Assembly (NCBI RefSeq): GCF_000189555.1
Contig: NC_017276.1
Length of the DNA: 64,000 bases
DNA from: Saccharolobus islandicus REY15A
GTDB lineage: Archaea; Thermoproteota; Thermoprotei_A; Sulfolobales; Sulfolobaceae
Strand: one strand, 5' to 3'
The notes below the pieces were generated by a model. That model was not told the DNA's origin. It saw only the letters and a list, made by a program, of their open reading frames with translations, and made no database searches. Positions 31,443-46,829 of the stretch are shown here, one piece after another (positions within the stretch are counted from its first letter, which is position 1; the number at the start of each line of letters is the position of its first letter). The position numbers and the translations under genes are program-made.

Positions 31443-32020
31443 AGGTAAAGTTTCTTTATATTTTAGTTTTTTCAGTCCTAATCTATGCAAATAGTATATT
31501 TTTTAATTCTGTCATACCATTTCTAGTTACATCGACCGTATTATATAGAAGAAAATGGATTATTGTAATAGAGGCTATAATTGGTATTCTATCTTATCTT
31601 ATATTGGGTTTTCTTGGGAAAATTTTCATTTATGAGTATACGCTTAGAGCTTTCTCAATTGTTAACGTTTTCCTAATTTCAAGCGACTATACTGATAAGT
31701 CTTCAATAATTGACTTACTTGGTTCTAAGGGGGTTCCTCTTGTAATCGCTCTTACATATTATCCTAGGTTTTATGATTTAATGCAAAACGTTGCATTTTA
31801 TGCAAGAATTCGAAAAATAAATTTATTAGATCTTAAAAGATTATTAGTTCCAATAATAGTAGAAACCGTGAAAGTAGCTGATAATTTATATGTTGCATAT
31901 ACTGTTAAGTTGTTCGGTAAGTATAATTATAAGAGAAATTTAAAACCTTCAAGGGGAGATTTAATACTTCTACTTATAGGTGTAGCCGCATTATGCTTAT
32001 CAGTAGTCCTAAATATTTAA
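31439..32020 (+). CDS. ECF transporter transmembrane (T) component, CbiQ-like
   Basis: TM N-terminus, coupling helices (ALTYYPRF...ARIR; [18 protein letters not shown]); ATGA overlap. Confidence 0.6.
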
Positions 32021-33117
32021 ACGGAAAGATAGAGATTGAAAAAGGAGAAAGAGTAGGTTTAGTAGGTAAGAACGGAAGCGGAAAAACTACATTAATATTA
32101 TCCACATTATGCATAGATCAGACTACCTTTAATAACGTTATAGTTGATGATATGGACTTCTGCAAAGAGAAGGATTATTCAAGAATCTCAGCAGTTTTAC
32201 AAGACGTTTCTTCTCAAATATTGGCTTCAACATGCAAGGATGAAATCGAGTTAATGAAAAGATTCCATAGGGTAGATGATAAAATAGCTAGAAAGTTAAT
32301 GGGTAATTACTATGAGGGCGAGTTCAATAAATTGTCGGACGGATATAAAAAGAGGTACGCTATCGCTTCAGTTTTAGCTTCAAATCCCGAATATATCTTA
32401 CTGGACGAGCCATTTGCAAACTTAGATGATGAAGGAGTAAGGTTGGTTAGTGAAATAATTCCTAAAAACAGTTTGATTGCTGAACATCGTATTGACGAAT
32501 TGCGCAAATTAGTAGATAGGGTCTACATGATTAAGAATAATACGGAAATAAATGAAATATCCAAGGAAAAACTTTTCGATACGGAATTCTTGAGGAAAGA
32601 AGGATTAAGAGGATTTAGTTTACCTAAGATTAACAGTGAATTGGGTAATGAAATATTTAATGTAAATGTTGATAATTATACGATAAAAATAAGAGAAAGG
32701 GAAATTTTGTGTTTATTAGGCAGAAACGGAAGTGGTAAAACTACTATTCTCAGAAAACTATTTAGGAAAATCTTCGTAATTTTTCAAGAAGTAGACTTAC
32801 AATTCTTTGATTTTACCGTAAAGGAGATTGTAGGAAGTAAATATGCTTTATCTTTATTTAAGTTAGAAAGTTTGGCAGATAGAAGTCCCTATGCTCTAAG
32901 TTTCGGTCAAAAAATGAGGGTTCTGATAGCATCAGCCTTTTCTTCAGACTCTAAAGTAATAGGCTTAGATGAGCCTAGTATAGGAATGGATGGAGAAGCA
33001 TTACTTTCGTTTTACGAAATGGTGAAAGTTCTTAAGGAGCAAAGACGAGGCTTAATTCTCGCTACGCATGATAAAGATATAATGAATCTATGTGACACAC
33101 GCATAGTTATAGATTAA
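31993..33117 (+). CDS. Fused double ABC ATPase (ECF A-A')
   Basis: Walker A GKNGSGKT and GRNGSGKT, signatures LSDGYKKR and [19 protein letters not shown]-loops. Confidence 0.9.
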
Positions 33118-33409
33118 ATAGCTAGAAACTCCCGTTGGGGTTCAAAAACGTGAGTATAAAAGAATTGTTATAGATTAAATAGAGTGTGGACAACAATTTT
33201 GTTAATTCAGTATAAATTGTATAAAGTATAAATTTATTTTCAATTCACCACAAGATTTATCAGTTAATAAAATATAATATTGTAATTTTAACCATGTTCA
33301 AAAGTTCTATTGTAAATCAGAGAGTTTAAATGATATAACTTTAAGGAAATTTTAACCAAATTTCAAATGAACGAAATTGTTGTCCACACTCGATTAAATA
33401 GCTAGAAAC
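33106..33409. repeat. 24-bp direct repeat GTTATAGATTAAATAGCTAGAAAC flanking a 37-bp unique insert; second copy split by a MITE
   Basis: Copy 1 is 33106-33129 and the insert is 33130-33166. Copy 2 is 33167-33181 plus 33401-33409 after removing the MITE and one TSD. Confidence 0.9.
33182..33391. mobile_element. 210-bp MITE with 18-bp perfect TIRs and 9-bp TSD
   Basis: TIR GAGTGTGGACAACAATTT (33182-33199) / AAATTGTTGTCCACACTC (33374-33391). TSD GATTAAATA at 33173-33181 and 33392-33400. AT-rich non-coding interior. Confidence 0.92.
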
Positions 33410-33448: not shown

Positions 33449-33545
<97 letters not shown>

Positions 33546-34122: not shown

Positions 34123-34510
34123 AGCTTCCGGTATAAAAACCTTTCCATGAAAAATCGAGCATAGTATATACTACTTACGCAAGCAATTTCACCTGCTTTA
34201 CTCGCTAGCATCAAAGGGCCTATTATAATACAACAAAGCCCAAATAATAACAGCAAGCTTTCTGGCACACGCAACAATCAACTTCCTACCCCTAAGCCTA
34301 CCCTTGTGCTCCTCATAAAAACGCTTAATAATAGGATTAACCTTGATAGCAGTCAAAGCTGCAAGATAGAAAGCCCTCCTCAAAACAGCATCACCCCTCC
34401 TAGATATGCCTCTCGATACAACACTCTTACCACTAGACTCAACAAGAGGATCGAGACCACAATAAGCAACAAACCTCTTCTTATCACCAAAACGCTTAAC
34501 ATCACCAACC
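34123..34510 (-). mobile_element. 5'-truncated IS110-family element (ISC1190-like): transposase C-terminus plus 3' non-coding end
   Basis: Minus frame reads VGDVKRFGDKKRFVAYCGLDPLVESSGK...RRGDAVLRRAFYLAAL...ACARKL, stop 34198. The downstream non-coding end is shared with the copy at 45831. Confidence 0.88.
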
Positions 34511-40840: not shown

Positions 40841-41627
40841 TCACTATCACCGTCCCATTGAGTTCTAAAGCACTACTAACTGGTCTATCTTTAACTCCAG
40901 ACCCTATTATTACTTTATTTACACCATTTTCAACACTTTCAGCAGCCATTAATAACTTTCTGTTCATTCCAGGGCCTATTTTTTTAGAAAGCTCTTTTGC
41001 CTCTTCCGGAGTAAGTCTATCAACTACTTTTCCTTCCACTAATACTCCTTCCACATCTGAAAGAATCACTAACACGTTTACTTTAACAGCTTTACTTATT
41101 GCAAATGCTGCTTGATCTCCATCAATGTTTAGTGGTGTGCTCTCTTCAATATCTAGGGCTAAAGGTGATACTACTATTATGTCAAATAATTTCATTAAAT
41201 GATTAATAACTTCACTCCTTACTTCTTTTACCTTACCTGTATAACCACCCTCAATTATTCTTTTCTTTCCTCTTTCGTCAATTACAATTATTCTTTTCTT
41301 TCTTTCTGCAAGCAGTAAGCCTCCATCAACACCTGTAATACCTATCGCGTTTTTACCTAAGCTGCATAATTTTGAAGTTATCGTTTTATTTATAAGGCTC
41401 ATTGCCATAATGTAAACTTCTAATTCTTCTTTTGTGGTGTATCTGCTTCTTATACCTTCAGGTGATGTTACGAAAACTGGTTCAATTCCCAATCTTTTAG
41501 TATAATCGGTTACAATATCTCCTCCGCCATGCACTAAAATTACCTTATCGTTTATATTTGCTATATCTAAGATTACCTTATCTAACGAGTTTTTTACTAC
41601 TCTTCCACCTATTTTAACCACTATCAT
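40833..41627 (-). CDS. lysZ: LysW-aminoadipate/glutamate kinase
   Basis: VVKIGG, VHGGG, NIDGD, SDVEG, GPGMNRK. Confidence 0.93.
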   Translation of the reverse strand: MIVVKIGGRVVKNSLDKVILDIANINDKVILVHGGGDIVTDYTKRLGIEPVFVTSPEGIRSRYTTKEELEVYIMAMSLINKTITSKLCSLGKNAIGITGVDGGLLLAERKKRIIVIDERGKKRIIEGGYTGKVKEVRSEVINHLMKLFDIIVVSPLALDIEESTPLNIDGDQAAFAISKAVKVNVLVILSDVEGVLVEGKVVDRLTPEEAKELSKKIGPGMNRKLLMAAESVENGVNKVIIGSGVKDRPVSSALELNGTVIVNG

Positions 41628-45830: not shown

Positions 45831-46829
45831 AGCTTCCCGTATAAAAACTTTTCCATGAAAAATCGAGCATAGCCACACTACTTATGCAAGTGATGAAACC
45901 TGCTTTACTCACTAGGGTCAAAGGACTTATTATAATACAGCACAGCCCAAGTAATAACAGCCTAGTACATGCAACAATCAGCTTCTTACCCCTAAGCCTA
46001 CCCTTGTGCTCCTCATAAAAACGCTTAATTACCGGGTTAACTCTAATAGCGACTAGAGCTGGAAGATAGAAAGCCCTCCTCAAAACAGCATCACCCCTCT
46101 TAGAAATACCTCTCAATACAACACTCTTACCACTAGACTCAACAACAAGACCACAATAAGCAACAAACCTCTTCTTGCTCTCAAAACGCTTAACATCACC
46201 AACCCTAGCCAAGATAATACAACCCAAGGTTTTACCAATACCCGGAATAGTGAAAATCAAACTATCCTTGGGGACTAACTCTCCAAGCCTCTCCAACTCC
46301 TCCAAGAGAAACCTCAGACAACACTATACTATCCCCACCCCTCAAAACCTCCTCCAAATTCCTCTTGGACAGACTATCCTTATAGCCTAAAAGTATCAAA
46401 TCCCTCCTCAACCTTAACCCTAGCAATACTCCTAGTAACAAAATCCCATTGGCTCGTTAACTTCCTAGCATCACTTACTTCAACTTATCCCCCATATTTA
46501 CAACTAATTCCGCAAGCATCATTCTTATCACTCTTCTTACCCCTAAAATCCTTGAACTTCTTGAGTACAAAGGGATTAATAATCCTAACATCATACTCAC
46601 TCATCAAGTACTTTGCTAGGTTAACGTGATAAACTCCAGTACTTTCTATACCTATCTTACAACCCTTAGGCAAGATCTTCCTTATCTCCTCAAACCCTTG
46701 CCTATCATTAGCAAACTCGTAGTATTTGTCTTGGAAATACATAATTAATTTATCTTTTGATACATCTATTCCTGCAACTGGGGCCTCCACTTTTCTCACC
46801 CTTATGTTTTATTCGGGCTTCAAGAGAGC
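45831..46829 (-). mobile_element. Degenerate IS110-family element (ISC1190-like) with frameshifted/deleted transposase
   Basis: N-terminal DEDD piece (AGIDVSK, IGIESTG, KKSDKNDA) at 46485-46790. C-terminal piece (TIPGIG, FVAYCGL-VESSGK, GDAVLRRAFY) ends at stop 45905. GCT occurs at both putative ends. Confidence 0.9.

Follow-up and report, generated by a model that had tools for sequence, protein, structure and literature searches.

A 37-bp segment between perfect 24-bp direct repeats at the end of an ABC ATPase gene of Saccharolobus islandicus: a probable off-target Cas1-Cas2 spacer integration

The 64,000-nucleotide stretch of the Saccharolobus islandicus REY15A chromosome analysed here, referred to as the window (contig NC_017276.1, assembly GCF_000189555.1), contains an unusual structure at the 3' end of a gene for an ATP-binding cassette (ABC) ATPase. 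A 37-bp segment stands there between two copies of one 24-bp sequence, the second of which is split by a miniature inverted-repeat transposable element (MITE). The arrangement has the geometry of one repeat-spacer-repeat unit of a CRISPR array. We argue that the locus is probably the product of an off-target (ectopic) spacer integration by Cas1-Cas2 that was later struck by the MITE, and we weigh this reading against the other routes by which such a structure could have arisen.

The coordinates of the features are collected in Table 1. The ABC ATPase gene is the third and final gene of a three-gene transporter operon; its product matches Pfam ABC_tran over three stretches (E=1e-33), its orthologues are labelled EcfA2 or cobalt ABC ATPase in their source records, and its C-terminus reads ...CDTRIVID. 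The codons GTT ATA GAT TAA (V, I, D and stop) open copy 1 of the 24-mer, so that the last three codons and the stop of the gene lie inside copy 1, which is native sequence as the first-pass annotation of this DNA had supposed. Past copy 2, ARAGORN predicts a tRNA gene that it leaves unnamed; lysine is our own reading of the CTT anticodon region. The 5' end of this tRNA lies 40 nt downstream of copy 2, and the 24-mer does not overlap it. The tRNA promoter region lies beyond copy 2 and was left intact by the insertion, and its TATA-like sequence is conserved out to S. tengchongensis. A promoter and terminator scan of the locus was uninformative.

Table 1. Features at the 3' end of the ABC ATPase gene, in window coordinates
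Feature	Position	Strand	Sequence, evidence or remark
Fused two-domain ABC ATPase gene, 374 aa, ECF/CbiO-like	31993..33117	+	Open reading frame list; Pfam ABC_tran
Weak hairpin, 7-bp stem	33088..33106	+	CTATGTG-ACACA-CGCATAG; final base is +1 of the 24-mer
Pseudo-repeat, copy 1 (24-bp target, duplicated)	33106..33129	+	GTTATAGATTAAATAGCTAGAAAC; single copy in every empty allele
37-bp inserted segment (pseudo-spacer)	33130..33166	+	TCCCGTTGGGGTTCAAAAACGTGAGTATAAAAGAATT; not in any empty allele
Second 24-mer (copy 2), left 15 nt, ahead of the MITE	33167..33181	+	Joined to the right part in L001, L002 and L005
MITE, 210 bp, inside copy 2	33182..33391		Terminal inverted repeats of 18 nt, without mismatch, GAGTGTGGACAACAATTT
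Second 24-mer (copy 2), right 9 nt, past the MITE and the duplicated 9 bp	33401..33409	+	GCTAGAAAC
Intron-containing tRNA gene, anticodon region CTT	33449..33545	+	ARAGORN; Rfam tRNA, 60.7 bits

Without the MITE, the window locus reads 24-mer, 37-mer and identical 24-mer. The geometry described by the first-pass annotation is therefore real and its coordinates are exact, and the same 24-37-24 unit stands uninterrupted in three other strains or assemblies (L001, L002 and L005 among the loci described below). Neither the 24-mer nor the 37-mer occurs a second time elsewhere in the window with 3 mismatches allowed, and in 100 shuffled versions of the window neither was matched once with up to 3 mismatches. 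The 64 kb hold no other exact repeats of at least 20 nt within 400 nt of each other.

Two look-alikes in the window deserve mention in their own right. Positions 32278-32295 (GATAAAATAGCTAGAAAG), within the ABC gene itself (codons D K I A R K), match the last 18 nt of the 24-mer at 16 of 18 positions; they encode a non-homologous position of the protein, and the match is probably due to chance. The sole other exact short-range repeat of note is an 18-nt direct repeat at 41252-41302 (CAATTATTCTTTTCTTTC), with a spacing of 33 nt.

The history of the structure was read from about 25 orthologous loci, which were found via exact matches to the ABC protein and via six related proteins, of which five share its 90% cluster and one is the S. 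tengchongensis orthologue. The filled allele is limited to the window, L001 (CP046616), L002 (CP003928, S. islandicus LAL14/1), L004 and L005. Those without the MITE (L001, L002 and L005) have 163 nt between the gene end and the tRNA, and the MITE is carried by the window and L004. Everywhere else, the allele is empty, with a single 24-mer, no 37-mer and 102 nt between the gene end and the tRNA. Such empty alleles, whose presence in relatives the first-pass annotation had named in advance as a check, occur in all outgroups and in the sister lineages of S. islandicus. They were found in S. shibatae (L006, L007), in S. islandicus Y.N.15.51, Y.G.57.14, L.S.2.15, M.14.25, L.D.8.5 and an M.16-type assembly (L003), strains that originate from Kamchatka, Yellowstone and Lassen, and in several hot-spring metagenome contigs; the more distant outgroup S. 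tengchongensis has one diverged site in the same layout. Of the empty alleles, that of L003 is nearest to the window, at 10 substitutions over ~3.3 kb, and the insertion is the sole indel in the operon-to-tRNA stretch among the S. islandicus loci compared. The derived addition amounts to 61 bp, of which 37 are new and 24 duplicated. By parsimony, the empty state is ancestral, and one clade gained the 61-bp insertion once, precisely and recently.

This distribution bears directly on three other histories. A tandem duplication of a 61-bp unit is excluded, as the 37-mer is present in no empty (ancestral) allele nor in the rest of the window. The opposite polarity, in which 24-37-24 would be ancestral and the single 24-mer would result from repeated recombination between the direct repeats, draws on the ease with which 24-bp direct repeats are deleted, as in the loss of CRISPR spacers. 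It would nevertheless require that the same deletion arose independently in S. shibatae, in the S. islandicus lineages of Yellowstone, Lassen and Kamchatka and in the S. tengchongensis line, with the filled allele surviving intact in one young clade only, and it would leave the origin of the duplication unexplained; we consider it extremely unlikely. The third history takes copy 2 and the codons upstream of it (AGA ATT GTT ATA GAT TAA, R I V I D and stop) for an old 3' end of the gene, displaced and diverged. The frame that runs from the 37-mer into copy 2 does end in ...KRIVID and a stop, echoing the ...TRIVID of the real gene end; however, just 3 of the 6 bases that precede the repeat agree. 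The rest of the frame, PVGVQKREY, does not resemble the ...THD.D...CD... pattern conserved at the C-termini of 40 orthologues, and no 3' end like the 37-mer was seen among the 44 orthologues compared. The segment is also missing from all outgroups, and a displaced gene end is hardly credible.

One orthologue has an atypical end of another kind. The 395-aa protein of Sulfolobus sp. A20 (P0004) has a C-terminus ~20 residues longer than usual (...NNEARARRDSNPGPTGISTSH), and this tail resembles read-through into tRNA-like sequence, which suggests that its stop codon was lost or that the gene end was mis-called.

The MITE came second, since filled alleles free of it exist: it is missing from L001, L002 and L005, which otherwise differ from the window by 1-2 substitutions. 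It is flanked by a 9-bp target duplication, GATTAAATA, at 33173-33181 and 33392-33400 (10 bp if a shared G is counted), and it had no match among plasmids. Two classes of MITE were reported in S. islandicus in the LAL14/1 genome paper, SM3A of 164 bp and SMN1 of 320 bp (PMC3718332), and the 210-bp element of the window differs in length from both. A related structure is seen in L004 (5190-5400; Logan SRR5578746, with 14 similar contigs), where the left ~80 nt of the window MITE stand at the same place and are followed by another MITE copy, diverged and ending differently on the right, then by unrelated DNA with a PIN-domain gene. Either two MITE copies recombined and so rearranged the chromosome, or the assembly was joined at the repeat.

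What kind of reaction could have produced a 24-bp duplication around 37 bp? The target duplications of insertion sequences (ISs) are roughly 2-14 bp long and those of casposons 14-15 bp, and no archaeal IS or casposon is known to give a duplication of 24 bp. The sizes found here are those of the host's own CRISPR arrays. The two repeat families of LAL14/1, family I (GCTAATCTACTATAGAATTGAAAG) and family III (GTAACAACACAAAGAAACTAAAAC), are both 24 nt long (PMC3718332, Table 7), exactly the length of the duplication. From the coordinates and spacer counts of the same table we computed a mean spacer length of ~40.7 nt for family I; the three arrays of family III gave means of 34.6, 37.1 and 35.3 nt. 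The 37-nt insert is within the family III spacer size (~35-37 nt). The 24-mer is identical to the family III repeat at 12 of 24 positions, which places it in the top 2% of window 24-mers, and shares with it the ends GT...AAAC, which are found in 1.6e-4 of window 24-mers; its identity to the family I repeat (9/24) is that of the background. In the comparison with the host repeats that the first-pass annotation had asked for, the 24-mer thus has exactly their length and carries the end motifs of family III.

The borders of the 24-mer also agree with the known preferences of Cas1. The S. solfataricus enzyme favours G at +1 and A at -1 (PMC4574026). At the window site, G occupies +1 on both strands and A occupies -1, with A|G at 33105/33106 and C33129 standing for the bottom-strand G, a condition that ~0.9% of window 24-mers meet by chance. 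The S. islandicus type I-A Cas1 prefers a hairpin with a 7-bp stem at the leader-proximal end, from -25 to +7 (PMC9456107). The hairpin at the upstream junction (DNA fold of -3.8 kcal/mol at 37 C, z about -1.7 to -2.2) could possibly have served as a Cas1 docking feature, a speculative hint drawn from the predicted fold. Adaptation has been reported in S. islandicus REY15A (PMC9456107), and LAL14/1 has three cas cassettes (PMC3718332). The CRISPR/cas modules of LAL14/1 all lie within 282-890 kb (PMC3718332), and in that genome the site lies near 1.678 Mb, far from these modules, as the first-pass annotation had proposed.

An enzyme with no link to CRISPR, be it another integrase, a transposase or the repair of a staggered break, could in principle have left a 24-bp target duplication with 37 bp of filler. 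Such an origin would accord with the result that no protospacer or protospacer-adjacent motif (PAM) tying the insert to adaptation was found in the collections searched. Against it, the 37-mer has neither terminal inverted repeats nor notable structure, the double coincidence with the host repeat length and the host spacer length would be left unexplained, and the duplication exceeds those of the transposable elements considered above. We regard a non-Cas enzyme as unlikely.

The first-pass annotation had itself offered a further alternative, a remnant of an integrative element, in which a plasmid or virus would have integrated at a 24-bp attachment (att) core, giving attL and attR, and an internal deletion would have left 37 bp. 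The neighbourhood lends it some plausibility. Integration in LAL14/1 favours tRNA genes and the sequence around them (PMC3718332), a tRNA gene lies 40 nt downstream, and the region past this tRNA is variable among strains and carries IS110 insertions. Yet the 24-mer lies outside the tRNA gene, unlike the usual cores of SSV-type and pNOB8-type integrases. No longer insert between the same 24-mers was found at any of the ~25 loci, again as the ectopic reading of the first-pass annotation had required. No attP was found either: the 24-mer had no exact match in IMG/VR, and a 37-nt query spanning the empty site had no meaningful match in the phage or plasmid records. Moreover, a random deletion would need to spare exactly a spacer-sized piece together with two perfect cores. 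An att remnant therefore finds no support in the loci and collections compared, and we judge it quite improbable.

The region past the tRNA has a history of its own. The stretch between the tRNA and an epimerase gene differs among strains. Relics of IS110-family transposases lie on the minus strand of the window at 34207-34503 and 45961-46778, and are 40-56% identical to an intact 357-aa transposase of LAL14/1; the gene for the latter (L002 6258-7331) belongs to an extra 1.2-kb insertion right past the tRNA.

A source for the 37-mer was sought in several collections. None was found in INPHARED (GenBank phage and archaeal virus records, with SIRV2 included as control), among the PLSDB plasmids, in IMG/VR (searched with a 20-mer, a 21-mer and three 16-mers; best extended match 27/37), in one genome per prokaryotic species or in the Joint Genome Institute metagenomes (both with a single exact 20-mer), nor in the remainder of the window or any fetched locus. 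In these collections, no IS, plasmid or virus thus ends in the 37-mer, a result that the ectopic reading of the first-pass annotation called for. Three short matches were rejected as due to chance: one of 20 nt in an unrelated viral contig of 60% GC, one of 22 nt in an Ardenticatenaceae metagenome-assembled genome and one of 22 nt in L022. The lack of a source is unsurprising, because ~10% of the LAL14/1 spacers have a perfect or imperfect match to known viruses or plasmids (PMC3718332).

Altogether, we consider off-target Cas1-Cas2 integration followed by a MITE insertion to be the likely origin of the locus, an opinion that we hold with moderate confidence. The sequences show the geometry, the polarity (a gain and not a loss), the precision and the order of the two events; it is the geometry, and the geometry only, from which we infer Cas1-Cas2 as the enzyme. 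We propose that, in the ancestor of the LAL14/1-like (Icelandic-type) lineage of S. islandicus, a Cas1-Cas2 complex carrying a 37-bp prespacer would have hit the chromosome and attacked, by staggered transesterifications, one G residue on either strand, at a distance of exactly 24 bp; the top strand would have been cut between A33105 and G33106, and the bottom strand opposite C33129. Filling in the 24 nt left single-stranded on each side would have duplicated the target and yielded 24-37-24, and the MITE would then have entered copy 2 in the sub-lineage of the window. The adaptation module of the family III repeats is tentatively favoured as the one responsible, because of the end motifs and the spacer size.

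Several points weigh against this proposal. The likeness of the 24-mer to the host repeats is modest for family III as for family I, the match of the GT...AAAC ends was spotted post hoc, and the hairpin at the junction is weak. The pseudo-repeats had no match to the Rfam CRISPR-DR families at E up to 10. The source scans gave no protospacer for the 37-mer, hence no PAM could be read, and those of genomes and metagenomes, which used one exact 20-mer, would miss a source with mismatches. If the window strain holds only family I arrays, the assignment to family III requires an ancestor with that module.

The first-pass annotation had gone further and seen here a one-spacer array created de novo by Cas1-Cas2. 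The integration part of this claim is supported, by the geometry, and all those refuting conditions of the first-pass annotation that could be examined turned out in its favour; the word array is an overstatement, as the pseudo-repeats match no CRISPR repeat family and nothing points to their processing. With the stop codon of the ABC gene kept in copy 1 and the tRNA promoter located past copy 2, the gene products are unchanged and the scar could persist. The insertion was thus probably a neutral event that left a scar and not a working array. It is unlikely to function as an immune locus, given that it matches no Rfam CRISPR repeat family, that the 85-nt unit (24-37-24) has no notable fold, that it has one spacer and that its copy 2 is broken by the MITE in the window. 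A nascent CRISPR locus, read through from the ABC operon, recognised at least weakly by Cas6 and the adaptation machinery of family III and capable of acquiring further spacers, is in our view very improbable; if true, it would be a natural archaeal case of de novo array genesis from non-CRISPR sequence.

Off-target integration in vivo and neo-CRISPR loci were reportedly described by Nivala, Shipman and Church in 2018 (Nat Microbiol 3:310), and that work is said to include candidates for natural events in Yersinia pestis and in S. islandicus. A preprint citing it speaks of circumstantial evidence in two other species (10.1101/148544). The window locus may be one of those cases and thus already published; the 24-mer, the 37-mer and the MITE end were not found quoted in the literature searched, a search that did not cover the 2018 article. 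Like the neo-CRISPR loci described there, the window locus has a spacer-sized insert, a repeat-length duplication of native sequence, a position far from the arrays and a loosely repeat-like site. The direct evidence there, in contrast, reportedly comes from the type I-E system of Escherichia coli, with Cas1-Cas2 over-expressed and IHF-like features at the sites; the present locus is archaeal and natural, and its polarity is set by comparison with many empty alleles. Since off-target spacer integration itself is already known, the window locus is at most a well-documented further example.

A closer biochemical parallel is found in Pyrococcus furiosus, whose Cas1-Cas2 carries out full-site off-target integration in vitro at pairs of G/C that are separated by exactly the length of one repeat; identity of these sites to the repeat is only ~43%, and their borders, namely G1, T2 and an A-rich 3' part, are conserved (Grainy et al. 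2019, PMC6698737). The window site resembles these sites, being 50% identical to the family III repeat and having a GT start and an AAAC end. The P. furiosus work differs from the window locus in that it used plasmids in vitro, a 30-bp repeat and a euryarchaeon, and did not show fixation in a natural population. With the S. islandicus arrays of families I and III (PMC3718332), the locus shares the 24-nt repeat length, the spacer size range and the duplication of the repeat upon acquisition; unlike those canonical arrays, its repeats are made of a gene end and intergenic bases, identical to real repeats at 9-12 of 24 positions, and it has one spacer, no leader and, by the LAL14/1 map, no cas genes within hundreds of kb.

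The viruses of the Sulfolobales offer another comparison. They reportedly carry mini-CRISPR arrays, described by Medvedeva et al. in 2019, that lack cas genes and have one or two spacers; the repeats of these mini-arrays are said to be genuine host-type CRISPR repeats, and the arrays are thought to be functional in virus-virus conflicts. The window locus is like them in having no cas genes and a minimal spacer count, and unlike them in being chromosomal and in having non-CRISPR repeats.

No physiological consequence of the scar for the cell is known. Its interest lies in what it records: natural and well-polarised Cas1-Cas2 integrations outside arrays are rare. The window locus provides a defined 24-bp archaeal off-target site, with the matching empty allele in genetically tractable strains, so that the site rules of the Sulfolobales integrase (its ruler length, its end nucleotides and the possible role of a hairpin at the junction) are directly testable. 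Such cases imply that adaptation has a real genomic cost for the host, and they are possible birthplaces of new arrays.

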